Program-made: the position numbers and the translations under genes
Sequence record: OR413585.1
Direction: 5' to 3' (one strand)
DNA: 64,000 bases
The notes under the pieces: model-generated
Seen by the model: only the letters and a program-made list of their open reading frames with translations
What the model was told of the DNA's origin: nothing
Database searches by the model: none
In this document: positions 21,381 through 39,800 of the stretch, piece by piece
Layout: the number at the start of each line of letters is the position of its first letter
How positions within the stretch are numbered: position 1 is the stretch's first letter

Positions 21381-21424
21381 TTTAACGAGGAACTTGACGG
21401 GTTTAAAGCCTGAAGATAATCCAT

Positions 21425-21458
21425 GCCCTCTTCCCCACGGGGAAGAGGCTTTCTTTTT
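21425..21458 (+). terminator. intrinsic terminator
   Basis: CCTCTTCCC-CACG-GGGAAGAGG plus T tract. Confidence 0.8.
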
Positions 21459-21485
21459 ATGACCCTATCAACTCAGGAGGTTATC

Positions 21486-22076
21486 GTGGTCGATCGTTGG
21501 AGTAAAGAGGGCATTATTCGTGCCAAAGTAAACATCGAAGCCGGTTACGTTAATAACCCGAAAGATTTGGGCAAAGCAACGAACCGCGGTGTCACCGAAC
21601 TCACTGCGCGCGAATATGGCTATAAAGGGGATATGCGTGACCTGAGCTTAGAAATCGCGTTAGACATTTACAACAAGCTCTGGTGGCAGCGGATGCGTTT
21701 AGACCAGATTATGAAAATGAATGTCCTGCTAGCTGACCGAATGTTTGATTTCGGCATTAACGCAGGACGCGGTAACTGTATCAAGTCCCTGCAACGTATT
21801 CTGAACGTATTAAACCGTCAGGGTAAACTATACGATGATATCGATGCCGATGGTGGTATCGGGCCACGTACGTTAACAGCGTTAGAAGGCTTCATCAAAG
21901 CCCGTGGGGAAGAGGGCCTGAATCGACTGATGTTCGCTTTAACCTGTCATCAGGTTGCGTATTACACGGAAATCAGTGAAGGGCGTGAGGATAACGAAGA
22001 GTTTACTTACGGCTGGTATGGCCGCGTCTATCAGGAAATGCCAGACTACGTGGCTAAGTTGGGGATGTGCAAATGA
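21486..22076 (+). CDS. glycoside hydrolase family 108 N-acetylmuramidase with C-terminal peptidoglycan-binding domain (endolysin-like)
   Basis: EAGYVNNPKDLGKATNRGVT catalytic motif; FDFGINAG; DGGIGPRT; GGAGG RBS before GTG 21486 (the track start at 21423 lies in the terminator). Confidence 0.85.
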   Translation: MVDRWSKEGIIRAKVNIEAGYVNNPKDLGKATNRGVTELTAREYGYKGDMRDLSLEIALDIYNKLWWQRMRLDQIMKMNVLLADRMFDFGINAGRGNCIKSLQRILNVLNRQGKLYDDIDADGGIGPRTLTALEGFIKARGEEGLNRLMFALTCHQVAYYTEISEGREDNEEFTYGWYGRVYQEMPDYVAKLGMCK

Positions 22077-22174
22077 AACAGAATTGGTTTGCTGCCTTAA
22101 TGAAAGCTATCTGGCGCGCCCTTGTTTTTGCCGCAAGGAGAAAACGTAATGACCCACCGTCCAACTCCGCCTAA
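22073..22174 (+). CDS. 33-aa amphipathic basic micro-ORF (MKQNWFAALMKAIWRALVFAARRKRNDPPSNSA)
   Basis: ATGA overlap with the endolysin stop; translated by hand. Confidence 0.4.
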   Translation: MKQNWFAALMKAIWRALVFAARRKRNDPPSNSA

Positions 22175-22301
22175 GTTCCCCGAAGTACAAACCGTTCCGG
22201 AAACGTATTACGATTCTGGGTTCTTCAAACTATTACGCGCGATCTTCTGTCGGAGGGTAAAGCCATGCAATACGACAACGACGACTGGCCGAAAGGCTTA
22301 A
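22149..22301 (+). CDS. 50-aa micro-ORF
   Basis: AGGAG RBS at 22136-22140; translated by hand. Confidence 0.45.
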   Translation: MTHRPTPPKFPEVQTVPETYYDSGFFKLLRAIFCRRVKPCNTTTTTGRKA

Positions 22302-22357
22302 TGCCCATTTTACTGGGATTAATGGTCCTCACGATGCTCGTGCGTTATATGACGTGA
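22265..22357 (+). CDS. 30-aa single-TM micro-ORF (MQYDNDDWPKGLMPILLGLMVLTMLVRYMT)
   Basis: GGAGG RBS; hydrophobic helix. Confidence 0.5.
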   Translation: MQYDNDDWPKGLMPILLGLMVLTMLVRYMT

Positions 22358-22364
22358 GGTCAGT

Positions 22365-23006
22365 ATGGAAGCACTTAAGTATACGTTGTTAGAGAAGCCG
22401 TGGTTTATCCTCACGGATGATTTCCATTTCGAGTTTACGTTGCGCAGCCTCTATCGTGAACAGACCGGAATGGATGCGATGGTAGCATTAGCAGGTGTGC
22501 ATCCGGATACCCCGTTATGGGTAACGGTACCGAGAGGATTTGTGACGGACCTGGCAAGCATTCCAGAAGCGTTACGTCCTATCCTGCATCCGGATGGGCC
22601 TTGGGCTGCTGCCGCTTGTGTGCATGATTTGTTTTACCAGAAACGTTCATCGGTAGGCTTTTACCCTGACACTGTCGAAGGTAATCTATCTCGTGCATGT
22701 GACAAAACATTCGCTGATCTGATGTTCTTACGTATCATGGAGGCATTAGGCGTTGACACCTTTATTCGTAAGTCCTTCTACCATGCCGTTCACGAGTTTG
22801 GTTGGCCGTCCTATGTAGACGATAACTCTAAGGTGGTTTATAGCCGGCCGGTAGAAAAGACGTTGTCCTATAATCGCAACTACCTGTTCTTTAGAACGTC
22901 GCGTACGTTAGCGATTCCTGAACACGAACGTGTTGACATTACTAATGGGCAACCGGTAAACGTGCAGTATTTGAATATCAAACGTGCGTTCCTGACTACC
23001 CCTTAA
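22365..23006 (+). CDS. DUF1353-family protein
   Basis: VTVPRGFVTDLASIP...AAACVHDLFY signature. Confidence 0.8.
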   Translation: MEALKYTLLEKPWFILTDDFHFEFTLRSLYREQTGMDAMVALAGVHPDTPLWVTVPRGFVTDLASIPEALRPILHPDGPWAAAACVHDLFYQKRSSVGFYPDTVEGNLSRACDKTFADLMFLRIMEALGVDTFIRKSFYHAVHEFGWPSYVDDNSKVVYSRPVEKTLSYNRNYLFFRTSRTLAIPEHERVDITNGQPVNVQYLNIKRAFLTTP

Positions 23007-23015
23007 GGAGAGAAA

Positions 23016-23531
23016 ATGTTTCATCCGAATCCTGCCAACTTCGCGTTAAAAGAGTTGATGCCGCAGGAGTACATCGCGAAATACGGTGAAGGTGCTATTC
23101 GTTTCCTTAATCCGTTACTGCTAATCTCGCTCCAACAGATTCGTAATCGTTTTGGGCGGATGGTGATTTTAACCAGTTCCCAGCAACAGCGTAGTCTGCG
23201 TACCCTGCAGTTCTTTATTAATCAAGAGAAACCAAAGGGTGGAGATTGGCAAACTCGTGCAAACAAACTGTACGCCGAATCAGGCAGTATGCATAAATTC
23301 GGTAATGCGTTTGATGCAACAATGCTTGATACTCCGTTGCAGAAAGTACACGACTATATTGCCGCGAACCCTAACGAGTTTCCGTTTATTCACTTTATCG
23401 AGTGCGATATTACCTGGCTGCATGTTGACGTACGCAACCAGCCTGATATCACCTTCTGGTCACCGACACGTGGTACCGTTAAAGTGGTTAAGCAACAACC
23501 CATCGATTGGAGCAAGCTAGTTAAAATCTAA
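23016..23531 (+). CDS. peptidase M15-like Zn peptidase (peptidoglycan-related)
   Basis: SMHKFGNAFD and WLHVD Zn-ligand motifs. Confidence 0.75.
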   Translation: MFHPNPANFALKELMPQEYIAKYGEGAIRFLNPLLLISLQQIRNRFGRMVILTSSQQQRSLRTLQFFINQEKPKGGDWQTRANKLYAESGSMHKFGNAFDATMLDTPLQKVHDYIAANPNEFPFIHFIECDITWLHVDVRNQPDITFWSPTRGTVKVVKQQPIDWSKLVKI

Positions 23532-24839: not shown

Positions 24840-24878
24840 CCTACCTCCCTTCGGGGAGGTAGGGCCTTTATTTTCTTT
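24840..24878. terminator. bidirectional terminator
   Basis: CCTACCTCCC-TTCG-GGGAGGTAGG flanked by A- and T-rich runs. Confidence 0.8.
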
Positions 24879-24880
24879 GC

Positions 24881-25552
24881 TTACATGCCGAGTGATTCGG
24901 ACAATGTTTTTAATCCAGTGTAATCGCGTTTTTCAGCTAACTCACGGATTTGGCGTTTGTTATCTGCCATTGCTGAGTGCAACACTTGGTCACGTGCAAC
25001 AATAGCGGCCAGCAACGCTTTACATTGGGCTACTGTAAACGGACTGTGCTTGGTATTCAGCGTATCGAGCCAGTATTCTGGTGCGGTATCTGCCTGAATG
25101 TATTGACCGAGGATGGTACGCGACGATTCATCGGCTTGAAAGTGACTACCTTCAAACTCGATATAACCATGGCGCTCATCTTCGTAGCGGTGGTCGAGTT
25201 CCAACAGCATCTTCTGCACGTCTTCGTAAATGTAACGTGCGGTAGATTTCAGATTCCCGCGAATTTCGTCGAGGTCAATCTCCAACACATTAGCAATAAA
25301 CTCTTTCGTGCGTTTCAATGTGAAGTTAGCTTCAATCTCCGACATCTCATACAGCTTCATGCGTGCCAGGGCTTCTTTATCAGACATCCCTTCGATGAGA
25401 TGGTAATGGAGTAATGCACAAAATCCGGTACGACCCTGATCCTGCGCACCGATTCGTTCCATGAAATTACCGTGACGATCAATCGGCAAATCACGCTGGA
25501 AATAACGGGCGCGGATCTCTTCGTTCGTTAAGCTTTTGTCAGTAACAGACAT
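24881..25552 (-). CDS. DUF4376-like (tail-fibre assembly-type) protein
   Basis: C-terminal GYIEFEGSHFQADESSR..WLDTLN..FTVAQCKALLAAI pattern. Confidence 0.6.
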   Translation of the reverse strand: MSVTDKSLTNEEIRARYFQRDLPIDRHGNFMERIGAQDQGRTGFCALLHYHLIEGMSDKEALARMKLYEMSEIEANFTLKRTKEFIANVLEIDLDEIRGNLKSTARYIYEDVQKMLLELDHRYEDERHGYIEFEGSHFQADESSRTILGQYIQADTAPEYWLDTLNTKHSPFTVAQCKALLAAIVARDQVLHSAMADNKRQIRELAEKRDYTGLKTLSESLGM

Positions 25553-26094
25553 TCGTCCTCCTCAATCAGGCCAAGTTCTAACAACAAACCGAAGTCCAGC
25601 ATCTGGAAGTCCTGATCGAGGTTACCGGCCCACAACACAGAAATGTTGTGTTGCTCTTCTTCTTCCAACTGCGGGAGCAGGTGTTCTTCGAAGATTTGAC
25701 GCTCTGTGTAATAAGCGTCAACCGGGTTATTGGAGCGTAAGTTACGAATACGCATCCGCGGGAATGACAAGCCCAATGCCACTAAACTTTCAGGACTGGC
25801 TTCATCGATAGAGTGACGTAGCAGTTCGATTTTGTGGCGTGGGTATGCAAGCAGTCGCTTCTCAAAGCCAGGGTTGCGCTTTTCGATTTCCGCGACAGAC
25901 TCGTGTCCTTTCTCAACGCAGTAGACCGGGATCATCACATTCAGCCCGTATTTAATCAACAGGCTTTGGATTTCATCAGTGAAGTCTTCCCCTGCCACAA
26001 TTGCGTGCACATTGTACAGCTTGCTTTTGCGCAGGAAGCGATCGACCAAGTGCAGCTTACGCTTCGTAAAATTGTGAATCAGTATTGACTTCAT
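25528..26094 (-). CDS. hypothetical protein in the rSAM cassette (start MKSIL)
   Basis: GGAG RBS upstream of ATG at 26094; overlaps both neighbours. Confidence 0.65.
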   Translation of the reverse strand: MKSILIHNFTKRKLHLVDRFLRKSKLYNVHAIVAGEDFTDEIQSLLIKYGLNVMIPVYCVEKGHESVAEIEKRNPGFEKRLLAYPRHKIELLRHSIDEASPESLVALGLSFPRMRIRNLRSNNPVDAYYTERQIFEEHLLPQLEEEEQHNISVLWAGNLDQDFQMLDFGLLLELGLIEEDECLLLTKA

Positions 26095-27385
26095 TCTGGG
26101 CTCCGTTTTGTAATTTTTCTGCTTCAGCACGTTGGCGTACACAACGTGAACAATAGCACATGGATTTATCGTGCAAATCTGATGCACGGGTCGTACCAGT
26201 TTTCTGATACCAATATTCCGCCGCCATCAACTTCGCAGTAGTCCAACCACACTGACGACGCTCGGCGTGATACGCTTTACGGTCTTCCAGTGTACCTTCA
26301 CCGTTTTCGTACGATGCTGCTGCGCAGCTACCGCAGCTGTGTTTCATCGGACACCCTAAACAGGTTTCTGGGTAGTTGGTGTACTGCGTTTGAATCTCTT
26401 CTAACAGCTTACCACCGTCCAGGCTCACAAACTCACGACCGACCAGTTCTGCTACAGCAGAGCGGGAAGTTACCGTGGACATGAAACGGTTACAACCGTA
26501 AATCTTGCGATCAAAGCCGAGACAGGTCATGTGCGTCAACGTACCGCAGTACGGTTTCAGGCGTTCTGGGTCGAGACGAACAGAGTCGTCATGTAAGAGT
26601 TTGTCACGCCAATCCGGGTCCCAAGTTGCCATAAAGTTCAGGCCATCCGGGATGATGTGCGTAATCGTGTTACGCGGGTTGGTGTGCAGACCCTTCTCAA
26701 TCCAGTAGTCCATCACGTCCATCATCTGGTTCGCGATATCCAACGCCATATGGCGCGGCAGGATATCTTCGTACGTTACGTTACCAGAGATGGTGCCACC
26801 GCCGGACATGTCAATTAACGATTTCATGCTGGCGGCATAGTGCGGCAATGTATCGATCGTAAACGTCGCCTTTACGCCCAGTTCAGCGATGCCAACACTC
26901 TTCAGATAATTGTAACCGCGTACCGCAGCTTCGTACGACCCTTCACGCGTCGTGGTAAAGATACGATATTTGTCATGGACTTCAGGTAAACCATCGATGG
27001 AGACCCCAATAGACAGTTTGTCTTTCCAGCGCTCGATAATTTCTTTGTTCAGCGGACGGTCCAGAAGCGTACCGTTCGTGGAGATACTGAACATATACGG
27101 GCGATTGTGTTCTGCGCATAACTTCTCTGCGGTTTCAAAGGCCGCCAAAAGAAGTTTAGGCTGCATGAACGGCTCACCACCGATGATATCGATGATGACT
27201 TCAACGTTCGGGATATCTTTATCACGCTCGAAACAAGCGTGGATAAAATCAATCACGTCTGCTACTTTGTTGTTACGCGGATATTTACGCTCGTAGCAGT
27301 ATTCGCAGTCCAGGTTACATGACAAGTTAGTCACAACCTGATACGTGCGTGGTGTGTACTGGATTTGCTGTTCGCTATTACTCAT
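26057..27385 (-). CDS. radical SAM/SPASM peptide maturase
   Basis: CNLDCEYC; IIGGEPF; ISTNGTLL; SIDG; SPASM cysteines YCG..C..GCNRF..CLGC..SCGSC..QC. Confidence 0.92.
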   Translation of the reverse strand: MSNSEQQIQYTPRTYQVVTNLSCNLDCEYCYERKYPRNNKVADVIDFIHACFERDKDIPNVEVIIDIIGGEPFMQPKLLLAAFETAEKLCAEHNRPYMFSISTNGTLLDRPLNKEIIERWKDKLSIGVSIDGLPEVHDKYRIFTTTREGSYEAAVRGYNYLKSVGIAELGVKATFTIDTLPHYAASMKSLIDMSGGGTISGNVTYEDILPRHMALDIANQMMDVMDYWIEKGLHTNPRNTITHIIPDGLNFMATWDPDWRDKLLHDDSVRLDPERLKPYCGTLTHMTCLGFDRKIYGCNRFMSTVTSRSAVAELVGREFVSLDGGKLLEEIQTQYTNYPETCLGCPMKHSCGSCAAASYENGEGTLEDRKAYHAERRQCGWTTAKLMAAEYWYQKTGTTRASDLHDKSMCYCSRCVRQRAEAEKLQNGAQNEVNTDSQFYEA

Positions 27386-28292
27386 TGTTCGCCGCCCGTT
27401 TACGCTTAGCAGAAATTACACGGTTGATGTAGTTATACGCATCAACGCCGATAGAACGCGCCAGGCGATTACAGCCGACTTCCAATATCTCTGGGGCGTT
27501 CTGAATTTGCTCCTGCGTACCGTCGGCGTTAAGCCACAGCACTTCACTGCACGTGTTGCACTCGGTATCGAACATTTTACTGATCGCAAGCCCACATTCA
27601 GAATCGTTCTGCATGTTAAGGCGTTCGATATTGTCGAGTATTTTCCAATACCCGTACATGAAGTTCATGACGTGGTCTGGCGATAACGGTTTCGGCATCA
27701 TCGCATCAAACAACAACGACACACCACCTGGACGGTAATGATAGATTGCTCGGTGCAGCTCGATGAAATCTTCGTACCAGCGTTTATCACCTAACTGGTC
27801 ACGCGTCATCACACCCCAGGTGTAATAGTTGTCCAGCTCGTACAGCACTTCCAGCGCTTCGTGATTACCACCGTTTACAAAGTTCATAAACGGACGTTCC
27901 GACTTCTTGTAGCCGTCAATGGACACAAAGATAAGGTCGAACTGTTTCAGCAACGGCAGATGTGATTTACGCATCTTTAAACCGTTGGTGTACATGTGAT
28001 GACGGAGGTTCGGATGAGACTCCTTCAACTCGTTCACGAAGTCTTCAATCTTACGCTGCGCTAACAGCGGCTCACCGCCCGTCCAATGAATCTCACCGAT
28101 ATCCGGATTCTTCTCTAAAATCGAGAGAATCTCTTCACGTTGAAACTCACGAGAAATATCTTCTCTATCCATGTAATAAGCCCCTCCACAGAAGCTACAG
28201 TCTAAGTTACACTTAGAAGTTGCGACAACCGACAGAATTGACGGTTTGTCGTACAGTTCAGACGAGATCCTGGATTCTACTTGATCTGTCAT
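27378..28292 (-). CDS. second radical SAM protein with a short C-terminal Cys region
   Basis: CNLDCSFC; WTGGEPL; YTNG; VSIDG; C-terminal CNTC..GC; GGAG RBS before ATG 28292. Confidence 0.88.
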   Translation of the reverse strand: MTDQVESRISSELYDKPSILSVVATSKCNLDCSFCGGAYYMDREDISREFQREEILSILEKNPDIGEIHWTGGEPLLAQRKIEDFVNELKESHPNLRHHMYTNGLKMRKSHLPLLKQFDLIFVSIDGYKKSERPFMNFVNGGNHEALEVLYELDNYYTWGVMTRDQLGDKRWYEDFIELHRAIYHYRPGGVSLLFDAMMPKPLSPDHVMNFMYGYWKILDNIERLNMQNDSECGLAISKMFDTECNTCSEVLWLNADGTQEQIQNAPEILEVGCNRLARSIGVDAYNYINRVISAKRKRAANNE

Positions 28293-28314
28293 TGCAGGTT
28301 GCTCCAGTATATTT

Positions 28315-29202
28315 TTAAATATAATCAATGGCGAATAAAGGATCTTCGTCTACGTTAGCGCCAGGCACCAGTAACATCGGGTCGTGATAGGCAGCTAAAA
28401 TTTTGTTCAGGTCGGCGTGTCTTTCGTTCAGGCGTTTCAAATCGGCCAACGTTACCGAACGACCACGAATCTCAGAAACAGCTTCTGCTTCTTCTTTCGT
28501 TAAATCCACCTTCGTTAAGAGGAAACTTACCAGCTTACTCAAGTCCGCTTCTGTCGCCGGGTAATCCCCATATCGAGTTTGAACCAGGTGTTGCATCCAC
28601 GGCTTACGAATACGTTTGGTGATTTCAAAATCGTCAGTCAGCGCATACCAGACAGAACGCTTTTTATCCCACACGAACTTATAGCTATACGCCATCATGT
28701 CCGCTAAACGGGTGATGCCGAGTTCTTTATACCCCTCGATATCGATGTATGGTTCGGTGTCGAAATACGTTTCCGTATCGGCAGGTACCAGTACAAAGTA
28801 GTAAGGGAACGAGCCCAGATAGTCCGGACTCCACCAACGGCGCGCCATCGGTTTTGCTTCCAGTTCGTCAAACGGTGTAAACATCAGTTCTAAATCGACG
28901 CTGTTGTTCAAAATCCCTTCACTGAAGAAATACTTACCGTCGACCAACACGCCGCGAGAGTTACCATCGCCGTTAAAGATAACGATGGCCTCTGCAACCA
29001 TATCACGGATCTTAAACGTATTTTCTACAGTGTAGTTCTTCTTATCGGTCAAGAAGCGACCACGAACCTTTGGCCACTCACCAGGAATCTGTGCAATCAG
29101 TCTGACTTTGTCAGCAAGGTGCGCACGCACTGAATCTGGGGAAGATAGATGCAGCGGGTGGTTGAATGTGGTTTTATACGCAAGATGCAAATCGTTTTTC
29201 AT
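28315..29202 (-). CDS. hypothetical protein between precursor peptides and rSAM genes
   Basis: GGAG RBS; tightly packed in the operon; no cysteines. Confidence 0.7.
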   Translation of the reverse strand: MKNDLHLAYKTTFNHPLHLSSPDSVRAHLADKVRLIAQIPGEWPKVRGRFLTDKKNYTVENTFKIRDMVAEAIVIFNGDGNSRGVLVDGKYFFSEGILNNSVDLELMFTPFDELEAKPMARRWWSPDYLGSFPYYFVLVPADTETYFDTEPYIDIEGYKELGITRLADMMAYSYKFVWDKKRSVWYALTDDFEITKRIRKPWMQHLVQTRYGDYPATEADLSKLVSFLLTKVDLTKEEAEAVSEIRGRSVTLADLKRLNERHADLNKILAAYHDPMLLVPGANVDEDPLFAIDYI

Positions 29203-29224
29203 TTAATACTCCGAACGTTTTCTG

Positions 29225-29431
29225 TTATCGATTCCCCGCTCCACGGCTACAGCTTCCGCTGCAGGACCAGCTACACCCACCATTACAGTTATAGTGAGAA
29301 AGCGGTAAGCCAGCCAGGTTATTTGTGGTCGACACGGTGCCCTGGTTAGCGATATAGTTGTTTGCCTGTGCGGTTGTAATGTAACCTTCTGCCGTAACGA
29401 GACGGTTTCGAATAGTCTTGAGACTGATCAC
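29225..29431 (-). CDS. Cys-repeat precursor-like peptide 3 (48-aa leader + 4 Cxxx units)
   Basis: SHYN-CNGG-CSWS-CSGS-CSRG; GGAGG RBS; leader paralogous to the two upstream peptides. Confidence 0.8.
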   Translation of the reverse strand: MISLKTIRNRLVTAEGYITTAQANNYIANQGTVSTTNNLAGLPLSHYNCNGGCSWSCSGSCSRGAGNR

Positions 29432-29446
29432 ATAAGCCTCCGTCAG

Positions 29447-29851
29447 TTAGGAGTTAGGACCTGAACAACCACCAGAGCACGCACCTGAGCAGTTTGCGGA
29501 GCAGGATTTACCACAACCCCCAGAACAGCTGCCTGTGCACGTGCCGCTACAACCACCAGAGCACGAAGAGCTACAGCCCGTGCAGCTGCTGCTACAGCCT
29601 GATACACAGTTTGCCGAACAAGTCGACCCACAACCACCTGTCGCAGACCCTGTGCAGCCGCCAGAGCAACTTGAGCAGCTAAAAGAACACGTACCACCAC
29701 AGTCGTAGTGCGAACGACCTTGACCTGCGAACAAGTCAGCGTTATTCGTAGCTTTATTGCGAATGTAGTTTTGCACATTCGTGGTATTCTTTAGAGCGTT
29801 TGCATCGATCGTGTTTAATCGGTTATTCAGTTCTTTTAATCCAATTGCCAT
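29447..29851 (-). CDS. Cys-repeat precursor-like peptide 2 (50-aa leader + 20 Cys)
   Basis: SHYD-CGGT-CSFS-... Cxxx/Cxx repeats; GGGGGA RBS. Confidence 0.85.
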   Translation of the reverse strand: MAIGLKELNNRLNTIDANALKNTTNVQNYIRNKATNNADLFAGQGRSHYDCGGTCSFSCSSCSGGCTGSATGGCGSTCSANCVSGCSSSCTGCSSSCSGGCSGTCTGSCSGGCGKSCSANCSGACSGGCSGPNS

Positions 29852-29861
29852 TTAATCCCCC

Positions 29862-30254
29862 TTAGCGACCTGAACAGCCGCCGGAGCAGGCCCCGGAACA
29901 ACTGGAAGAACATGAGCCACCGCAACCACCTGTGCAGTTACCGGTACAGCTACTACTGCAACCACCAGAACAACCAGAGCAACCAGAACAGTTACCGCCA
30001 CACGTCGAAGAACAGCTACCGATACAAGAAGCAGAACAGCTTCCTGAACAGCTCGAACAGCCGTGCGAGCAACCGTTAGAGCATGTCCAAGAACATGTCC
30101 CGCCGCAATCTAGCTGTGCTTTCGTCCAACCCCCAAATCGGTCTGCCGCATTATGGGCTTTAGAGGCCACTTGCGCCTCGATGCGGGGGCCTGTCGCCAT
30201 GTTAGCTTCGACTATCTGGACGCGGTTTCTGACGTCTTTAATAGATATCGCCAT
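29862..30254 (-). CDS. Cys-repeat precursor-like peptide 1 (49-aa leader + 21 Cys)
   Basis: AQLD-CGGT-CSWT-... repeats; AAGGA RBS. Confidence 0.85.
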   Translation of the reverse strand: MAISIKDVRNRVQIVEANMATGPRIEAQVASKAHNAADRFGGWTKAQLDCGGTCSWTCSNGCSHGCSSCSGSCSASCIGSCSSTCGGNCSGCSGCSGGCSSSCTGNCTGGCGGSCSSSCSGACSGGCSGR

Positions 30255-30319
30255 TACGCTTCCTTAAAAAGTAGAACGAGCGGACTATGTCCATAAACAT
30301 AGTCCGGCTCGTAAACAAG

Positions 30320-31522
30320 TTACTTAGTACCCGCTTCAGCTTGAACATCGTCGCGCGAGGTGAGGTTGTTGTTGACGTGAACAGCAGCCTGCACAACACC
30401 TCCATACTGTTTATGGAGGTAATTCGGGTGTGGGTTATCCGCAGCCGCATGGTTCGCCAGATTCTGGTTTGCCTGCGAAATTGCGTTGGTGTTGTTTATA
30501 ACCTGAGTTTTAAGACTGTTGATTTGTCCTTGCAGGTTATCAATTTGCTGTTGGAAGTCTTTGCCCTGATTCTCAAGATCCGTGACGCGCTGATTTGTTT
30601 CATTCAGTGCAGACTGAAGATCGTTAACCATCTTCTGTAATTGCAACACCAGAGAATTAAGGTTAGCTAATGCTAACGACATTTTCTGGTAATTTTGAGC
30701 AACCACGTTAAGCTGGTCGTTCCACGCGGCTAACGAAGCCACAATTGCATCGATGCGTTGCCCCAACGCCGTGTCTGCTGCTCTTAAGTCGCCGATATCT
30801 TTGATAGTGGCGTCAATGGCAGTCTGTACACTTTGAATCAGAGCACGAATCTCCGTCTCCGTCAGGCCATTAACCTGATGAATGTCGAGATTGTGTACGT
30901 TACCTTCGGCGTTGATGTGGACATTTAAGGCATCGAGGAAGTCGTTTTTCAGACCGTCTAGAATACCTTTAATTTCCTCCAGCTGTACTGCAGAGCCGGA
31001 GTTAATCGCATCTTTAATCCCCGCGAGTACGGTAATGATATACTCAAAACCGTAGATATCGCCAAGGTCTTTATACGTCGGGGCGGACGGGAACGTATCG
31101 GGTACGTTTCGAAGATCCTTGAAGTCCACCACGCGGTCTTCAATTTTCAACGACGCAATCGCTTGTCGGATGCCTTCGACGTTCGCAGACTGAAAACCAC
31201 CAACGACTTGCGCAGAGACTTCGATATCAGTAGGAATGGCCGAGTTAGTTACCACCACACCCATGACCACTTCGCGGTTCTTGGTCATTTTCTGATATGC
31301 AGTATGTGCAAAAATCAGCTCGTAGTCTGTGCCGCGTTTGTACGGGTAGACACCCGGTTTATTCGCAGCCGCCAAGCGGAAGGTATCCGCGTAGAAAGCT
31401 CCGTCAGGAAATGCAAAAGCCCGGTTAACTTTACCAGAACCTAACGTAATACGCCGTGTAACGGCGTTCGACGTTAATGTCCCGGTAAGGTCGAGCGGGT
31501 ACTGATGAATGATTTCGGCCAT
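30320..31522 (-). CDS. tail-fibre-like virion protein with a long coiled coil (start MAEII)
   Basis: RGTDYEL N-domain shared with the three large upstream genes; heptad C-half; NHAAADNPHPNY; AAAGGAG RBS. Confidence 0.75.
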   Translation of the reverse strand: MAEIIHQYPLDLTGTLTSNAVTRRITLGSGKVNRAFAFPDGAFYADTFRLAAANKPGVYPYKRGTDYELIFAHTAYQKMTKNREVVMGVVVTNSAIPTDIEVSAQVVGGFQSANVEGIRQAIASLKIEDRVVDFKDLRNVPDTFPSAPTYKDLGDIYGFEYIITVLAGIKDAINSGSAVQLEEIKGILDGLKNDFLDALNVHINAEGNVHNLDIHQVNGLTETEIRALIQSVQTAIDATIKDIGDLRAADTALGQRIDAIVASLAAWNDQLNVVAQNYQKMSLALANLNSLVLQLQKMVNDLQSALNETNQRVTDLENQGKDFQQQIDNLQGQINSLKTQVINNTNAISQANQNLANHAAADNPHPNYLHKQYGGVVQAAVHVNNNLTSRDDVQAEAGTK

Positions 31523-31569: not shown

Positions 31570-34500
31570 TTAGGTACGGAACATAAGATTGACCTGGATA
31601 ATATCAGGCTGCTGACGTCCTCTCTCGTTCACCCAATCGTGCGCAATCGTTAACGTAAGATCATCGCCATCCCACGCCACGATCGGTGGTGGGAATAAAC
31701 CCTGAGCGCCCGTGGTAACAACCGGGATTGCACCTGCCACATTCGTAAACGTATAGCTACGACTGTTCAGAACAACTGGAGTGCCATAGGTTTCTCCCGG
31801 CTGTGGTAAGATTTGAATCTTACTATCCGAAAGATCGGTGGTGATTGGTAGTCCCCCCGCTTCCGTGAAAAGCCAAGAGCAAATATGCTGGTTGGCTGTT
31901 TCGAGCGCTGAAGAACTTACCGCCGCGACAAATGTAAAGGTGCACGGCACGCCTGCTGGCAGAGAGTGTTGTTTGTGATACACGGTATGTGGTGACGGCA
32001 ATAACACTTCTGGATTTTCGTCAATGTTAACATCCGTACCTTCCGCTTCGACGTTGTAGAAAAAGCCATCCACCGCCTCCCATGGGGCAACGTGGACATT
32101 AAAGGTCGTTTCTACTCCCGGTGTACCTGGGACGACGAATTTACTTTGCACCACCACCATCAAGTTCGTTGAGGTCGGTGAGAAAGCGGGCGTTGGAATA
32201 CCTACCCACTCCATTCCCAACGATGCCGCTTCACCGTTCTCATCAGCCGTTACCGTCGCGATTGTTGTAGGATGCTTCCAAAACGCCCCCGACTTGTTTG
32301 CCTGAGTAAACGCCGGCAAAGTTTTCAAGCCTTCGAAACGTTTGGAGACCATCGCTTTACCGCGACGCTGTGCGTCAGATACGGTATAAAGCAACTGACT
32401 ATCCAGATAGCCTTTCGTAGCATCGATCGACAAAGGACCCATCGCTTCTTTACGCAATGGTGCCAGTCTGCCCGTTGCTGCATCCCTTCCCACTTCCACA
32501 TCATGCTTATTCTCAACCGCCGCGTGTTCCAACAGTTGTTTCACCGCCCCCAATCGCTTAGCATGTTCGACGTTAGTCTCGACGACTCGCGACGAGCCCG
32601 TTTTAACATACCCGATATAGAGTTCCGTTTCAGTGTCTGGATGTTGAATCACGTCCATTACGTACTTCGGTGTACCATTTTCTACCTTGGCGTGCAGGTA
32701 GAATGTCCGGTTCTGATGGTTTGTTGGAAATGCTGCGCTGAGGTCAATATACCACGTAGGCAGCTTATAAGTGCTCGAGCCGAAACGCAGGTCAACTTCC
32801 TCAGTCACGTATACCAGCCAACCTTCGGCGGTTTCCACACCAGCAATGACGACCGATTCAGTCGGGCCACTAAAATTAGGAGCCGCGACAAAATCACTCG
32901 ACGACATTGCGATACCACCACAATAGACGTAGTCGAGAGATGAGTTGTGTAGCATCACCTGATCACGATGAGCCAGATAAGCTGGGCTGACTGGAGTGTG
33001 GGATGGTGCCATGCGTCCAATGCCGTGTGGAGCAGAAGAACGCGTCCAGGTACCATTAGACAGCGTAAGACCAACACCGTAGTTAAGCGCACCCAAGTCG
33101 CCAATTTGGCGCAAGGTTAACGTGTGTGGAAGATACAACCCGAACTGAGTACCATCTACTGACACCAGTGTAGGTTGTCCCGGCCGGCGTGTTTTTCCTC
33201 CCGTTATCTCACCCAACGTAGCATAGTTCAAGCCATAGTCGAGGTTGTTATAGAAGTCAAACAGTGCCAATATCGCTGCGGGGAATGTTACCTGCCCGTT
33301 GCTGATCGTTGGTTTCAGTGTAAAGTAGTAGATATCCAACACGTTAACATTGTTCACAGTACGCATACATGCTACTTGTGCTAACGTGAGCGGTGTGGCC
33401 GTACCAATGCCGATGAACCAAATGGAGAACAGTGCCTTTCCGGCGTTATTTGCGGCAAGGATAAATTCCGAAGCATAACCATTCGCAGCGCCAGCCGGTG
33501 CACCGTCGATGATCATCTGCTTCATCTTATCCCATTCGGCTTGTGACAGCGTCAACCGATCGGCATGAATCGTGAAAGTGCCAGAAACGTTGTGGTAAGG
33601 GAATGTTTCTGGTCCTGTGCAATACCAGCCGTTTAACTCTGTACCAGGCGACGCCGGTGTAACAATGTGGCACATCTGCGACAGATTCTCGTACGTGGTA
33701 GAATCTACTACACGACGATTGTTAGTTGGTCCATACCCCGCTTTACCTGAATAAGTGGTGTTCGGATCAAACTCAACTTCAATTGCCAAACGGGTACGCG
33801 GCTGTGACAACCAGATAAGTCTGGAATTCGCTCCCAGAGTCAGCGGATACGCCATACCCAGCTCGTAGATAGAACCACGACCTTGGTTTAACATTACCGC
33901 ACTAAAACTTCTGGCAGTGAAGTTGTAGTCGCACGACAGGTACTCGTACCAACTCACACCGTCATCTAACGTTGTAATCGTGACATAAGGCATTAGGTCG
34001 CGATCGCCTGCATGTCCTTGCGAAACGATATACTTGTCTTGCGATGTTGCAAAGGTTCGGTTATTAGCTTGACCTTCGCCCCATTTCCGGCTCGGAATCC
34101 CAATCTCAGCGCCACCGTTATAACGAACCGTGGTAAGATCGGCCACAATAGGGAATCGATCAGCACCTTCCAGCGTTATCGTCATTGAACTACAATCAAC
34201 AACAAAGCTTGACACCCATTGTTTAAAGTTAATAGTTTGCCCTGTAGTAGAAGCAAACCAAACCGTTGGAGTTAAACCAACACGAAAGTTCAGCCCATCC
34301 ACACCAATCGCGTGATTACATTCCGGACCATGGACGAAATTTCGCGCACTATTCCACTTCGCCGATGCGTCTGCGTAGATTTGTGTTACTGGCGCTACCA
34401 ACACATCTGTATCAGAACGTTTCTGACCCTGACGCAAGTAGATATTATCTCCCGACGTTAACATCCCACCTGTTAACACATCCGCCACAAACGTGTTGCT

Positions 34501-36753
34501 ACCACCCAGATTAAGTTCGTCGAGTGCGATGCTACGCATACTCACGAAATAGTCACCGGAGGTAAGCACAGTACGGAGCAGATAAACCCGCTCGTTGCAA
34601 ACGATCAAATCGTTTGTTGATGGATCAACAACCCATGGAGCGGTTGTAATCACACCGGCCGCGTTACCATTTCGGTAATCGCCCAACTGAACTTTAACAA
34701 CACGATGATGTTTTGCATGGTCAATGGTGCCGTCAAAGATGACCAGGTAGTACGCACCGTCACTGCCTAAGCAGATCATTGCATCTGTACCGGTAATCAC
34801 AATAGCAACCAGATTCACCCCAGGATACGCCGACATTCCAGCGGGTCGATAACGTACGGACGTCTGCTGCATATTTTCCAGCGTATTGCTTGGCGACACA
34901 TCAGCATAGGCGTAATAGATAGCCCAGTCACCTGGTGGATTCCCGTTAGAACCGTTACGGAGCGAGTAAACCTTACCAGACTCGTAACGCGCCAAACCTT
35001 TCTGCCAGGTTTGGTTTTTGGTATACCCTTCGTAGTTCCCCTGGACTGGTATAGGCAAGAAGTTATTGTTGCCGTACGATGATCCACCGACAGTCCACGC
35101 CGGTAATAACGTACCAATCTTGTCATTCAGTGTGTCAATCTTTTGTTCAAGCAAGAAGCCCTGACGCGAAGTGACCATCTTATCCGAGGTAGTGTCGATT
35201 GCATCCCACAGTTTAGCCAAACCTGTAACAGACGTGGATGCGTACGGCACGTTATCGAGATCTGCAATGGTGTGGGTGTGCGTTGTAAGCGCTTTGCCTG
35301 ATAGCACGGTACGCAATGCGTTAGTAACAGGCTTTTCTAACGGTCCGGTATTGTCCATTTTCTCAATACCGAAATCTGCCGCGGTTAAGGTCAGATGCAT
35401 CTGCCCGTTTGAATCTAATACAAACCCTTTACCGTTGACTGTATACGTGTCGTCCACATATCCGTCGAGTTTGTTCTTCAAGTCAGTAACAGCTTTTTGG
35501 GAAATCGCTGTGGACGCTGCAGCGGATGCCGAGAGGTTAGTAATCGCAAACAAACCCTGCACAGTTGTGGTTGCTGCAGGCAGCTCCGCATTCATGTAAA
35601 CTTTGTTTGTTTCTTTACCAGAGCCGTAAATCTTCAACGTGTCGCTGGACTTGAAGTAGGCGTTTGCTGGAAGTATCTTCACCGAGGTCAAGTACATCTT
35701 AACCATATCCGGTGTAACGAGATACACGCTGTTATACACAGGTGCAAGCACACCTGCATCATAAGCGCCCCACTTGTCACCTGCTTTACCCGAGTGAACC
35801 CAAAGCGTGTTCAGGCCAGCACTGAACTCCGTAGCGATACCCGGTTCGTTGTTATCCTGGTCAGATTTTAATACCAGCGGTTTTGTCGAGGTGATGATGA
35901 ACTTCTCACCTTTCATGCTGATAACGTGACCAGACGTTGTTTGGAACGTAATCGCGTCGTTATTCAGAACACGCATACGGCCCAGTAAATCACCCAGGGT
36001 ATTATCCAGAAGCATGTCAACATGTTTCTGTTGGATACCGCTGGTAGACATTAGCGTCACTAACTCTGCCAGTGTACGTCCAAACGCTTTAGTCGCATCC
36101 ACGGCCTTACCGAGCACAGGGAGTGCGCCAATGTCACCGCAGGTGTAATCATGTGCATTTTTAATCAGGTGGTGTTGATACATTTCGTCATCAAACACCT
36201 GTTTACCGTTCTGATAAATCAAATCGGTAACTTCGGCAAATGCCTCATCCAGTTCGTGGGCGCGCTCTAAAATACCCAGACGGATATCTTCCAACGCCTT
36301 TACGATTTCATCGCGAAGAATCGCTTCTTCGAGATCTTTTGGCGGGTCGATTGGCGAGATAATCGGTGGATATTTCATCAGCTCAGACCAATCGCAGTTG
36401 CGCGGGTCTTTCATATCCGTCTTAACCAGATACTTGCCGATTTCAGAAGCAGGGATGCGATACTGTCGACCAACCGACAACAACTCGTATTCTACCTCTG
36501 TGGCGTTCAGCAGCATTATGCTGCCGTATATTGCATCGTTCTCAGCCTCGGCTAATTCCTGGAAGTAATGTCCTAAGAAATAATCAAGACCTTCTATTAA
36601 CTTGCGTTTGGTTCCGGTTGTTTTATCGGTAACGGTTAACGTTAACCCGATGCGATAGAACGGTGCTTCGACGGGAATGACCGTCGAATAACGGTTCGGG
36701 TAAGTAGCGGTACTGAGGGTACCGTTAAACTGCGCCGCATCTTCTCTCGGCAT
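31570..36753 (-). CDS. large tail-fibre/baseplate protein, about 1727 aa (start MPRED)
   Basis: PFY..LIEGLDY N-domain; fibre repeats ATTTVQGL and ASTSVTGL; GGAG RBS. Confidence 0.8.
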   Translation of the reverse strand: MPREDAAQFNGTLSTATYPNRYSTVIPVEAPFYRIGLTLTVTDKTTGTKRKLIEGLDYFLGHYFQELAEAENDAIYGSIMLLNATEVEYELLSVGRQYRIPASEIGKYLVKTDMKDPRNCDWSELMKYPPIISPIDPPKDLEEAILRDEIVKALEDIRLGILERAHELDEAFAEVTDLIYQNGKQVFDDEMYQHHLIKNAHDYTCGDIGALPVLGKAVDATKAFGRTLAELVTLMSTSGIQQKHVDMLLDNTLGDLLGRMRVLNNDAITFQTTSGHVISMKGEKFIITSTKPLVLKSDQDNNEPGIATEFSAGLNTLWVHSGKAGDKWGAYDAGVLAPVYNSVYLVTPDMVKMYLTSVKILPANAYFKSSDTLKIYGSGKETNKVYMNAELPAATTTVQGLFAITNLSASAAASTAISQKAVTDLKNKLDGYVDDTYTVNGKGFVLDSNGQMHLTLTAADFGIEKMDNTGPLEKPVTNALRTVLSGKALTTHTHTIADLDNVPYASTSVTGLAKLWDAIDTTSDKMVTSRQGFLLEQKIDTLNDKIGTLLPAWTVGGSSYGNNNFLPIPVQGNYEGYTKNQTWQKGLARYESGKVYSLRNGSNGNPPGDWAIYYAYADVSPSNTLENMQQTSVRYRPAGMSAYPGVNLVAIVITGTDAMICLGSDGAYYLVIFDGTIDHAKHHRVVKVQLGDYRNGNAAGVITTAPWVVDPSTNDLIVCNERVYLLRTVLTSGDYFVSMRSIALDELNLGGSNTFVADVLTGGMLTSGDNIYLRQGQKRSDTDVLVAPVTQIYADASAKWNSARNFVHGPECNHAIGVDGLNFRVGLTPTVWFASTTGQTINFKQWVSSFVVDCSSMTITLEGADRFPIVADLTTVRYNGGAEIGIPSRKWGEGQANNRTFATSQDKYIVSQGHAGDRDLMPYVTITTLDDGVSWYEYLSCDYNFTARSFSAVMLNQGRGSIYELGMAYPLTLGANSRLIWLSQPRTRLAIEVEFDPNTTYSGKAGYGPTNNRRVVDSTTYENLSQMCHIVTPASPGTELNGWYCTGPETFPYHNVSGTFTIHADRLTLSQAEWDKMKQMIIDGAPAGAANGYASEFILAANNAGKALFSIWFIGIGTATPLTLAQVACMRTVNNVNVLDIYYFTLKPTISNGQVTFPAAILALFDFYNNLDYGLNYATLGEITGGKTRRPGQPTLVSVDGTQFGLYLPHTLTLRQIGDLGALNYGVGLTLSNGTWTRSSAPHGIGRMAPSHTPVSPAYLAHRDQVMLHNSSLDYVYCGGIAMSSSDFVAAPNFSGPTESVVIAGVETAEGWLVYVTEEVDLRFGSSTYKLPTWYIDLSAAFPTNHQNRTFYLHAKVENGTPKYVMDVIQHPDTETELYIGYVKTGSSRVVETNVEHAKRLGAVKQLLEHAAVENKHDVEVGRDAATGRLAPLRKEAMGPLSIDATKGYLDSQLLYTVSDAQRRGKAMVSKRFEGLKTLPAFTQANKSGAFWKHPTTIATVTADENGEAASLGMEWVGIPTPAFSPTSTNLMVVVQSKFVVPGTPGVETTFNVHVAPWEAVDGFFYNVEAEGTDVNIDENPEVLLPSPHTVYHKQHSLPAGVPCTFTFVAAVSSSALETANQHICSWLFTEAGGLPITTDLSDSKIQILPQPGETYGTPVVLNSRSYTFTNVAGAIPVVTTGAQGLFPPPIVAWDGDDLTLTIAHDWVNERGRQQPDIIQVNLMFRT

Positions 36754-36848: not shown

Positions 36849-39800
36849 CTAAGAGGCCCACTCACCCGAGTTGTTGCCTTCGTTTCTACGTTCAGTATCC
36901 AACGTTTGTAAAATCCAATCCCATGTCCTGGTGGGGATATGGAATGGATTACGCTTCTCAATGAGAATCGTCTCGCCACCAGTGCGAAGTTCCACCGGTG
37001 TCGTTTCAGTAATCACGAACATCGGATTACCGCTACTGCCCACGCCATTAATAGTGAACTTCGCTTGCAGCGGCGGCACAGAACCTTCCGGAGGCACGAA
37101 CACGATGTGAATTGGCTGCATCGGTTTCGTGCGGGCAAGAGTCCCAGATATCTGAACAGCTGTTGTCGATGCACTGAAAGGTATAACATTACCCGAAATT
37201 TTCTCACTACCCACGATGATATATCCTGGGTAGTTAGAGAGCATTGTCCCATTTACCGACACAAAACGCTCATTTTGAGTTGGGCGATAAGCCCGCATAA
37301 AGCCGTACTTCCATTCACCACCGTTAGACGTATAGTCTGCAGGAGCCGACTCAAGTAGCGGAGCACCACGTTTCTGCAGCCCTTTGTAAAACGGCGCTGG
37401 GAGTTTACCGTTCGGTGCAAGTTCCGGATAACCCTCACTTGCAGCAGACATCGTGATGTATTCCGTAACCGGGTTATCGACGTTATCTCCAAAGTTCGCG
37501 AACGCGACGGTTGATATCGACATCTCCTCATGCCCAGAAGACTGGCTGTCCGGAGAACGCTCAATATACGACTCAAATAGCGAGCGTAGATAATGGAAAC
37601 GATTTAAATCTACTTCTGTTGTGGAAGGGTCCATCAAACCGTGGTTGATTGTGACGCCTTCACCAGTTTCGATGCCAGTAACACTAATCGATAAAGCGCC
37701 GCCTTTAAAATAATCAATCGCGTCAAACGGAAGGTCGTATTCTATCTCACGAATAGTTGCCGAAGCCTGGCCGCCTATCTTACTAATCGACGATATTCGC
37801 AGTATCTGCGTATCAACAATATAGCGATAACGAATAAGCCAGCGCGAACCAATGGCTGCGAACTCGCTAGCGATTGAAACCGGGAGATAGTCTAAACAGT
37901 CAGGCGACTGAACATCCACGCTCTTGATTACACGAGGAGCATCAACCAGCGTATTAGTAACGCTGGATTGTGTGGTGGCAATTCTTCCGGTTGGTTTATC
38001 GTACGGCGCAGCAATAAAGCCGCAGTTTAAACTGGTGTGGGAGTTACTCCACCGCAGGACTCTGGTTTTACCTTTCTCATCAGCAGAAGGGGCCATGAAG
38101 TTTAATGAAACTACGACGTCCGAGATTTTTGGGACTTCAGGATAATCAGTGTCGATTACCACCGAACCCTCGAATGTCGCCATTCCATTTTCTTTCGGGT
38201 TGCTTGGTGTAAACCAGCAATACGGGGACGCGTTTTCAGTGGAAACAACCGCCGCAAGAAGAATCCTGAGCGAGGTGGCACTTACGAATTTATAATCAAA
38301 TAACCCACGATCTAAACGAACGAGGTTATCCCCAGAAACAGACGGGTTAGTTGGATACGCATACAGCCATTGTTTAGGTAATGGATCAACCTTATTCAAC
38401 GGCAGCATTTTCGGGTTATCCGTCAACGACCAGTCGGTGTTACTCACCCCGTGTGCTAGACGTGTTTCGAAGTGCCGTTTAAGTTCGGACGCCATGCCGA
38501 AGTCAAACGTCGTTTCAAACTCGTAAGTCGTGCCTGCAACCAATCCCGCGTCAGGGACATCAATGTGGCCGATATAGCCGCGTTCCAAGTTAATACCTTC
38601 CGTGTCCACAATAGGTTCGGCGCGCGAATATAACGCATCGGTTATCATGTTCACATAGAGGTAATGCCTTAAACCGTTCGGCGTCTTAACAAACTCCTGC
38701 AGGCGGGCGACTTTGGTGTTTTTATCCGAGGCCCCAACCGCAAAGTCACCGTCGTAAATTGTGAAACGAATTGCGGCTGCTTTAGCGCTATCGTTACATT
38801 CTGCACGGAATGCTAAGCAGTGTTGCTTCCACCCCTCTTTGACAGTCGCCTCCAGATACCCCGCTTCTGTAATACCCGCACCGATAATTTCACCGTCCAG
38901 ATAAACAGAAACAGCACCACCGCCACGAACCCAAATCCGCAGCTTACCAGAGTCGCAACGAACCCACGTTTTCGCCAAGAGGTTAACGACTGACAAATCA
39001 CCCATTCCGGTTGTCGTTAACCCAATCTGCGCACCGTAGTTCGTTTCCGGGACGGCAACCTCAAACCCACTAAAATCAATACCGGCACCGGTATTAATTA
39101 CCGCGTTCTGCCACGTTCTTTCCATACGGTTATCTGGAGAGAACCACTGGAACATCGGTGTGGTTTGCAGGTCTATCGAACCAGATACCGTCCCCTCTTT
39201 ACGTGCACCATTTAACAGATAGAAATAATTCAAATCCGTTACGGCGAGGGTGGTACGTGTAGATCCCACAGTCCAAGTCTTACCGCGCACAGCGGCAAAA
39301 TCGGTCACGGAATCCTCTTTCGCGTTTGCTAGCGCAGCTGCAACCACGTCTAAACGTTTTGACAAATCGTTCAGAACGTTCGGGGTAACGCCGCGATTAT
39401 CCGACAAGCCGTTTAGGTTGGTAGAATATCGAGCGATACCGGGAACTGTTTGAGAAGCCGTTGGGATCTGTAAATCGGCGAAGTTGTGATGGTGACCTTT
39501 ATCACTAAGACCGGTAACTGCTTCTGCCAACGCATCAGAAAGTGGTTTATCGACGTCAGCTGTGTTATCAGCCAAGTCCAGACCCAAATCCTTTTTCGTT
39601 AGCGTTCGGCTACCAGTGTCCATCGGCTGGTTATTCAGCAGCGTTGTCTTCCTGACGTACGAAGACAGGTCACCCTCGTACGGTAAGAGCGAAGCTGGGG
39701 TGACTGCTTGTCCCTTGACTACATCGCTCGGCTTATCAGTCAGCGTCACAACGCCGGGTTCAGAGGTCGTCGCGGGTTTGGCTGTGACCTTCCCGGTGAC

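Follow-up and report, generated by a model that had tools for sequence, protein, structure and literature searches.

Several described systems pair a radical S-adenosylmethionine (SAM) enzyme with a protein or peptide that it modifies, and they are the natural comparison for the locus considered here: a minus-strand unit in a stretch of 64,000 nucleotides from sequence record OR413585.1 (hereafter the window), from the Salmonella phage SPLA5c, in which three small genes for cysteine-repeat proteins (P1, P2 and P3) lie among tail-fibre genes and two radical SAM genes (rSAM-A and rSAM-B). The first comparison is with the paired families TIGR04114 and TIGR04115 (PF27846), which resemble our locus in setting a Cys-x3 substrate beside a radical SAM enzyme with a SPASM domain; to our knowledge this family has been defined by genomics only, without solved chemistry. 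In PapA, the substrate of PapB (freyrasin, NF047865), the cysteines of a repeated motif with four-residue spacing are each thioether-linked. CteB, the SCIFF maturase (5WGG/5WHY), is a SPASM enzyme that makes a cysteine thioether, while QhpD (TIGR03906) is a SPASM radical SAM enzyme that puts several cysteine thioethers into QhpC, a subunit of a protein complex. QhpD is the closest case by logic, its target being a complex subunit and not a released peptide, but it is distant in sequence (55.5 bits for rSAM-B, against a cut-off of 453), its target is a periplasmic enzyme subunit, and that target has no repeats. Covalent reinforcement of a virion protein also has a precedent in the HK97 capsid chainmail, where Lys-Asn isopeptide crosslinks form autocatalytically with no dedicated enzyme; there, unlike here, the protein is a capsid protein and the reaction is self-catalysed.

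The arrangement of the genes has a second set of analogues among tail-fibre loci. In P2 (gpH/gpG) and in V22 (gp26/gp27, the latter a DUF4376 protein), a fibre end is followed by helper genes, as it is here. The fibre chaperones known so far act on the tip by folding or trimerising it and make no covalent bonds, whereas in the present unit radical enzymes have been added. Full-text searches of open-access literature found nothing on this cassette, nor on a radical SAM enzyme maturing a phage structural protein; radical SAM genes of cyanophages, which were matched in the literature, proved unrelated, and the preprint on the Goslar virion structure mentions neither radical SAM nor cysteine.

Our reading, which we hold with a modest lean in its favour, is that what the cassette builds is no secreted peptide but an enzyme-crosslinked tail-fibre tip, which here has become separate, free-standing subunits. 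The gene order, the near-obligate association of enzyme and cysteine block, and the occurrence of the same block at the end of true tail fibres in other phages all bear on this; from them we infer thioether chemistry, a place for P1-P3 in the virion, docking on gp167, and the roles of gp165, rSAM-A and gp162 described below. The genes and signals of the unit, in their order on the minus strand, are as follows (gene names are those of phage SPN3US).

40992-44705, minus strand: gp170-like large baseplate/fibre paralog of 1237 amino acids (open reading frame; paralogy with gp168 and gp169).
36849-40979, minus strand: gp169-like large baseplate/fibre paralog of 1376 amino acids (open reading frame; paralogy).
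31570-36753, minus strand: gp168-like large baseplate/fibre paralog, 1727 amino acids from the annotated ATG (paralogy).
30320-31522, minus strand: gp167-like coiled-coil virion protein of 400 amino acids (coiled-coil and phrog_2163 matches).
30276-30312 (more broadly delimited, 30264-30312), minus strand: stem-loop with a U-rich tract after it, in the gap from the gp167 stop codon to the start of P1 (folding, and position kept in relatives).
29862-30254, minus strand: P1, 130 amino acids with 21 cysteines (phrog_6085, E 1e-40; Shine-Dalgarno site; conservation).
29447-29851, minus strand: P2, 134 amino acids with 20 cysteines (phrog_6085, E 3e-41; Shine-Dalgarno site; paralogy).
29225-29431, minus strand: P3, 68 amino acids with 4 cysteines, GTG start (phrog_6085, E 2.7e-24; Shine-Dalgarno site).
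28315-29202, minus strand: gp165-like protein of 295 amino acids (homologs beside Cxxx fibres).
27378-28292, minus strand: rSAM-A, radical SAM protein of 304 amino acids (PF04055, E 2.3e-15; CxxxCxxC).
26057-27385, minus strand: rSAM-B, radical SAM/SPASM protein of 442 amino acids (TIGR04115 and PapB matches, both below cut-off).
25528-26094, minus strand: gp162-like protein of 188 amino acids (phrog_7988 the sole match).
24881-25552, minus strand: gp161-like DUF4376 protein (PF14301, E 1.4e-9, 38.8 bits against a cut-off of 25).
24840-24863, both strands: two-way hairpin resembling an intrinsic terminator and closing the unit (10-bp stem, 7 of its pairs GC, with a run of T on each strand).

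Only 10-22 nucleotides separate the peptide genes from one another, and the genes downstream of them overlap by 8-38 nucleotides. The SPLA5c record is identical (100%) over the 6.7-kb cassette region, and SPN3US and about 30 other jumbo phages of Salmonella, Escherichia and Proteus are 98-99% identical to it; by sequence identity, SPLA5c is an SPN3US-like jumbo phage of the genus Seoulvirus, family Chimalliviridae; an earlier, sequence-only reading of positions 24881-31522 was right in its labels 'jumbo phage' and 'Chimalliviridae'. That reading had also placed a 295-residue protein, two radical SAM genes (one with a full set of SPASM cysteines), a gene of no recognised type, a DUF4376 gene and a terminator downstream of the peptides, and all are found on the minus strand where it put them. 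Its 'four tail-fibre paralogs' need adjustment: three large paralogs exist, upstream of the span it described, and the fourth, gp167, is a shorter relative of gp169 at the N-terminus.

The association between this type of enzyme and the cysteine block is close to absolute. We searched near each enzyme for an open reading frame with at least six Cxxx repeats, and where one was found it always lay on the strand of the enzyme. Such a frame is present in 78 of 79 viral loci with any relative of rSAM-B (the exception is a 1.7-kb fragment). It was likewise present in 10 of the 12 best loci from prokaryotic genomes, and in none of 68 loci (0.88 Mb) that were fetched through unrelated radical SAM genes. 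In SPLA5c itself, P1-P3 lie 0.9-2.9 kb upstream of rSAM-B on the same strand.

What the cysteine block does is suggested most directly by those relatives of rSAM-B that share 30-47% identity with it (group 1), whose neighbouring genes we labelled with profile hidden Markov models (HMMs) built from alignments of the fetched open reading frames. These enzymes sit in the tail modules of unrelated phages, where the cysteine block forms the C-terminal end of a fibre. The informative loci are these, with genes in order.

L032, P2-like: baseplate J- and I-like genes; a Cys-ended fibre of 384 amino acids with a PF12571 match (E 1.8e-40); gp165-like; rSAM-B-like; rSAM-A-like.
L033, lambda-like: central tail fibre J (phrog_31, E 1e-167); a Cys-ended protein of 255 amino acids; gp165-like; rSAM-A-like; rSAM-B-like.
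L031 and L036: Cys-ended fibres (phrog_6722, E 2e-40, and phrog_2631, E 3.6e-31, respectively); then gp165-like; rSAM-B-like.
L008, a T4-like contig of 213 kb: gp13; a fibre-like protein of 568 amino acids with 30 cysteines at its end (PF27846, precomputed match); two radical SAM genes.
L007, prophage-like, Deferribacter abyssi: a GpJ-like gene; two small genes; a tail-repeat protein of 302 amino acids with 29 cysteines; gp165-like (assigned at an hhalign probability of 97%); rSAM-A-like; rSAM-B-like.

The fibre of L032 is gpH-like and has the P2-type N-terminal domain; its gp165-like and radical SAM genes follow it directly, as helper genes follow gpH in P2 itself. The 255-residue protein of L033 has no tail-fibre match of its own. 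An exhaustive HMM search with the peptide P2 returned 102 representatives, many of them proteins of 185-560 amino acids in which a fibre-like shaft ends in the same C-terminal block. The profile phrog_6085, a PHROG with no assigned function that all three of our peptides match, finds fused fibres from 15-30 residues before the first cysteine onwards; among the loci listed it matches the C-terminus of L036 and not those of L031 and L032, whose terminal Cxxx blocks are short and joined to the shaft by another junction. We compared 30 sequences, both split and fused. Ahead of the first cysteine, position -10 is Leu or Phe in all of them, -8 is Gly in 28, -13 is Ala in 20 and -2 is Tyr in 21, and the second cysteine is followed by Ser (27/30), Trp (28/30) and Thr or Ser (27/30). 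In every one of the 30, the cysteine block stops 3-7 residues from the C-terminus.

P1 is built to this plan, with a helical stub of about 50 residues, the junction motif, and a Cys-x3 block of 21 cysteines that ends 3 residues before the stop; P3 retains only the stub, the junction and the first repeats. The cysteines of P1 number 21 in every genus examined, a count that holds while the intervening residues change; P2 has 20-23 and P3 has 4, although in Derbicusvirus, Wellingtonvirus and L010 P3 has only 2-3. Across the 30 sequences the spacing is four residues in 453 of 534 intervals and three in 76, and the positions between cysteines are mostly Ser/Thr, then Gly/Ser, then Ser/Gly/Thr. The phrog_6085 match begins ahead of the first cysteine, and so most of what had been called a leader has its homolog in the terminal stretch of a fibre shaft. 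The 'leader' regions of P1-P3 are thus better read as fibre stubs, and the three proteins themselves are most likely minimal fibre subunits, not precursors of ribosomally synthesised and post-translationally modified peptides (RiPPs) in the usual sense. Of the sequence-only reading's three paralogous 'leader plus (Cxxx)n' genes, the paralogous Cys-x3 genes stand and the leaders probably do not. The first 16 or so residues are special to the split form and conserved among P1, P2 and P3; they may be a docking helix that stands in for covalent continuity with the shaft. This N-terminal stub was sought elsewhere in the window and not found.

The principal competing explanation is that the peptides are true RiPPs, with genuine leaders and with crosslinked cores that lysis releases as antimicrobial, signalling or anti-competitor peptides, their position beside the fibre genes reflecting late expression only. 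P1-P3 are small proteins whose N-terminal regions are conserved, the maturases of ranthipeptides and sactipeptides are relatives of the enzyme, and small Cxxx peptides do adjoin true TIGR04115 enzymes in bacterial genomes. We nevertheless regard a released product as improbable, given that the same junction and cysteine block are fused to real tail fibres in P2-, lambda- and T4-like contexts, and that the unit is closed by a homolog of fibre chaperones. Nor were the expected companions of a released peptide detected in the cassette: no immunity gene, no RiPP recognition element (Pfam and NCBIfam searches, and a fold search with gp165), and no leader peptidase or exporter (Pfam, NCBIfam and PHROG). 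Cores of 80 residues with 21 cysteines are also far larger than those of the thioether RiPPs known to us. The RiPP label of the sequence-only reading is therefore not borne out, and 'leader' and 'RiPP' are probably misnomers for a system of protein maturation. Its choice between a virion part and a late effector can be narrowed too, the virion part being strongly favoured by the cysteine block that ends true tail fibres elsewhere.

Turning to the enzymes, rSAM-B has the radical SAM motif CxxxCxxC at cysteines 23, 27 and 30, and further cysteines at 280, 298, 342, 345, 351, 354 and 379, all of them invariant in 20 relatives down to 31% identity; by their pattern, these seven are a complete SPASM set. 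The protein begins about 20 residues before CxxxCxxC and has no N-terminal extension, whereas CteB, which is nearest to it by sequence among solved structures (5WGG, E 3e-10, followed by an anaerobic sulfatase maturase), has an N-terminal peptide-recognition domain of about 100 residues. Among NCBIfam models rSAM-B is best matched by TIGR04115 (125.6 bits, cut-off 350), then by PapB (113.6 bits, cut-off 340, aligned over residues 22-357) and then by other peptide maturases. The peptides match TIGR04114 and no other NCBIfam family (P1 19.6, P2 17.1 and P3 13.7 bits), each falling below the cut-off of 20; the local copy of Pfam gave no match for P1-P3, and precomputed PF27846 matches exist for relatives (the 568-residue fibre of L008, and P0166). 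The system had been recognised beforehand as a radical SAM/SPASM enzyme with a Cxxx-repeat substrate, and these two families named; they are indeed the best matches for enzyme and peptides respectively, although neither reaches its threshold.

The thresholds are informative, since true members of TIGR04115 among the fetched loci score 654 (L081), 486 (L099) and 383 bits (L094), while for the SPN3US-type enzymes, and for their relatives at 30-47% identity, the scores are about 125-155 bits with TIGR04115 and PapB alike. The clade of rSAM-B, roughly equidistant from the two, is a sister clade and a member of neither. It differs from the TIGR04114/TIGR04115 pair in its extra gp165-like gene, often in rSAM-A, and in a distinct junction motif. 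The likeness extends to context: in L081, the TIGR04115 enzyme directly follows baseplate J- and I-like genes, with two Cxxx proteins in the expected fibre slot. About 3.5 kb downstream of the enzyme and Cxxx proteins, this baseplate module of a gut phage also has a reverse transcriptase gene (L081 12732-14006; phrog_1423, E 1e-75), which may belong to a diversity-generating retroelement targeting a fibre gene nearby. Beside other TIGR04115-like enzymes, in Margulisiibacteriota and Termititenax genomes (L090-L092), L082 and L044, there are Cxxx proteins of 400-670 amino acids with 77-122 cysteines, far exceeding the size of a peptide.

The second enzyme, rSAM-A, has CxxxCxxC and three conserved C-terminal cysteines (positions 40, 44, 47, 257, 260 and 286 of a 316-residue open reading frame), the latter probably belonging to a short auxiliary-cluster domain. 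The two enzymes are not recent duplicates; they have the radical SAM core alone in common, at 26% identity. Nor are they metabolic genes, as the labels MoaA and QueE in some GenBank records would have it, for peptide-maturase families far outscore these for rSAM-B and the linkage to the cysteine block is near-absolute. In two related viral contigs (L012 4542-5453 and L027 4543-5454) a second rSAM-A paralog lies between P1 and P2.

A different objection concerns the chemistry and leaves the fibre tip in place: the cysteines might bind metal ions or iron-sulfur-like clusters, or form disulfides, while the radical SAM enzymes carry out another modification of Cys or of Ser/Thr, or make C-C links between chains. 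The fibre context would be the same, and the reaction is open in so far as rSAM-B lies below the cut-offs of all families, the repeats have no acceptor Asp of the PapB kind, and an anaerobic sulfatase maturase is among its matches. We think this unlikely all the same, because the best-scoring relatives are all formers of cysteine thioethers on Cys-rich substrates, and the odd and variable cysteine counts (21, 20, 23, 29, 31 and 11) argue against strict disulfide pairing.

Beyond the enzymes, the most constant companion of the Cys-ended fibre is the gp165-like protein. Homologs lie beside Cxxx fibres in L007, L010, L030-L033 and L035-L037, and in L034 by single-sequence search only; apart from L008/L029, every group-1 locus has a gp165-like gene along with the Cxxx fibre and rSAM-B, even where rSAM-A is missing. 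The latter enzyme is paired with rSAM-B in L007, L008, L010, L032, L033, L035 and L037, and is absent from L030 and L031. The core module would therefore be a Cys-ended fibre with gp165 and rSAM-B, with rSAM-A, missing as it is in some lineages, an accessory. No match to gp165 was found in Pfam, NCBIfam or among PDB sequences. Its AlphaFold2 model is well defined (pLDDT 87, pTM 0.83), with a beta-rich N-terminal half and a helical C-terminal half, and a fold search of PDB and BFVD with that model returned its own ortholog only; neither sequence nor fold searches support its being a recognisable RiPP recognition element or a known fibre chaperone fold, though it might have a binding fold of a new kind. 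The gp165-like genes occupy the slot in which P2-like phages have their fibre assembly gene, and gp165 may be a substrate-holding or chaperone component.

No match to gp162 was found in Pfam, NCBIfam or PDB, and its homologs were detected only in the SPN3US-like clade and in L010. gp161 has no relative in PDB, and is a probable tail-fibre chaperone, a role described for two other DUF4376 proteins, gp27 in Alteromonas phage V22 and gp9 in phage A5 (PMC7289586, PMC10579305). At the other end of the cassette, the hairpin after gp167 has a minimum free energy of -24.3 kcal/mol (z -3.7) and is kept in position at the gp167/P1 gap in L003, L004, L005, L006, L013 and L016 (five other relatives, four genera); the stem sequences differ and the loop always has UAUG. 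It could be an attenuator placed after an abundant gp167, or a phage promoter or processing element. No Rfam family was found in the window.

The upstream genes supply a candidate for the shaft. The gp168-, gp169- and gp170-like proteins are mutually paralogous, whereas gp167 shares only its N-terminal 170 or so residues with gp169 (residues 49-215, 27% identity, E 3e-7). It has coiled-coil matches and a strong match to phrog_2163, 'virion structural protein' (E 3e-107), and no large distal domain, and may be the shaft that carries P1-P3. In SPN3US, virions contain gp170, which is associated with the tail, and gp169, while gp168 is a tail protein that is missing from tailless particles (Ali 2017, PMC5694885). 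The same proteome found gp167 in virions at 70% coverage and as a non-head protein, and lists gp167-gp173 while gp161-gp166 are unlisted (Ali 2017, Supplementary Table 1, PMC5694885). That gp161, gp162, gp165 and both enzymes are unlisted fits roles as assembly factors.

Their company raises the question of whether P1-P3 might themselves be transient: modified, used as temporary caps or scaffolds for the folding of gp167-170, and then discarded. A role as transient caps has been described for the DUF4376 chaperones of Alteromonas phages (V22, PMC7289586), the degenerate cysteine block of P3 suggests a non-structural helper, and P1-P3 are unlisted in the published virion proteome (an uninformative point); yet in the fused forms the cysteine block is covalently part of the fibre, with no Peptidase_S74 domain and no evident cleavage module in those proteins, and we consider a discarded factor very unlikely.

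We also rejected the notion that P1-P3 are chance open reading frames in low-complexity DNA, on the grounds of their ribosome-binding sites, their conservation and the way differences fall on codon positions. All three have a Shine-Dalgarno site, their N-terminal halves are paralogous (E 4e-13, 4e-10 and 6e-6), and orthologs of the whole trio are found in Seoulvirus, Machinavirus, Derbicusvirus and Wellingtonvirus as well as on an unassigned contig of 27 kb. Against a relative of about 83% identity, P1 shows 27/17/77 differences at codon positions 1/2/3, its codon changes being 58 synonymous and 30 non-synonymous (39 and 13 in the cysteine block alone). By the evidence of ribosome-binding sites, third-position bias and conservation in four genera, P1-P3 are true genes. 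Gene callers appear to miss this type of gene systematically: the DNA of P1-P3 is unannotated in SPLA5c, SPN3US_0166 (JN641803) overlies that of P2 in a different frame, and in a collection of 15 billion proteins the exact sequences of P1 and P2 are absent while an identical rSAM-B occurs on 598 contigs. In Machina all three are annotated, as hypothetical proteins.

Two further observations concern the records and the surroundings of the cassette. The assemblies of SPFM1, 9, 10 and 12 (LR535901, LR535907, LR535908 and LR535911) are more than 99% identical to it, but in 40 short pieces with 37% coverage, and their predicted cassette proteins are truncated or frame-shifted, which suggests that these assemblies carry many small sequencing errors. 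The convergent neighbours of the cassette (21423-23531, plus strand) include an endolysin-like gene, a gp157-like gene annotated as a tail assembly chaperone, and a peptidase M15-like gene; the chaperone label of the second conflicts with the listing of gp157 as a 'head protein' in the SPN3US proteome.

In proposing how a crosslinked, split fibre tip could be made, we suppose that the unit would be expressed with the fibre genes late in infection. gp165 would hold the substrate where it is best conserved, at the junction and the first repeats, and rSAM-B, with its SPASM domain and two auxiliary clusters, would link cysteine sulfurs to carbons of neighbouring residues by way of SAM-derived radicals. 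The product would be a ladder of thioether rings, as in the nearest characterised relatives; thioethers are proposed because the nearest characterised families (TIGR04115, PapB and CteB) are thioether formers. rSAM-A might add a second kind of modification or treat a subset of the sites. The stubs would then attach to the fibre apparatus; the most plausible site is the far end of gp167, taken as a baseplate-anchored coiled-coil fibre that has no distal domain of its own, with gp161 as chaperone and gp162 assisting assembly. That there are always exactly three paralogs with homologous N-terminal helices invites the speculation that P1, P2 and P3 form a heterotrimer.

Several observations weigh against this proposal. 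The chemistry of rSAM-B is extrapolated, because it fails the cut-offs of TIGR04115 and PapB and scores far below those of every characterised family. In PapA the acceptor Asp lies four residues past each cysteine, whereas here the next cysteine occupies that position and Asp is near-absent (at most 1-2% at every position inside the four-residue repeats of the 30 sequences); PapA is, moreover, a short peptide of secreted type and not a fibre end. An AlphaFold2 model of P1 gave no confident fold, with helices at about residues 4-37 and nothing beyond, and at a pLDDT of 42 we set it aside as structural evidence. gp165 has no likeness to known peptide-binding domains, and the grounds for docking on gp167 consist of gene order and the missing distal domain. 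P1-P3 are not listed among the SPN3US virion proteins, which is uninformative because the annotation that was searched did not contain them, and virion proteomics could not have detected them. Finally, Firmicutes genomes have stand-alone Cxxx peptides of 62-94 amino acids beside true TIGR04115 enzymes, so that both fused fibres and small-peptide forms exist; these small peptides resemble ordinary RiPP precursors, and for the split SPN3US form they keep a peptide product in play.

Considered together with its relatives, the cassette raises a broader possibility, which we would place a little short of an even chance: that the Cxxx-repeat and SPASM system, hitherto catalogued as an uncharacterised RiPP family of bacteria, is mainly a phage device, in which fibre ends bearing a ladder of cysteines are crosslinked by dedicated radical SAM enzymes before assembly in many lineages, which may include P2-like, lambda-like, T4-like, gut and SPN3US-like jumbo phages. 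A widespread family of orphan 'RiPPs' would then be explained, and SPN3US-like phages would be its sole cultured model, with the tip divided into three stand-alone chains. The missed or wrong-frame annotation of P1-P3 in reference records means that proteomic and structural studies of these phages have been blind to them. The tip determines the targets to which a phage can attach, and its folding is ordinarily ascribed to chaperones and nothing else. If our reading is correct, fibre maturation would include a new class of step that depends on iron-sulfur enzymes, and it would be the first case of enzyme-installed radical crosslinking of a virion protein; the product would be a very small, Gly/Ser-rich and covalently laced module, possibly of use as a stable scaffold.

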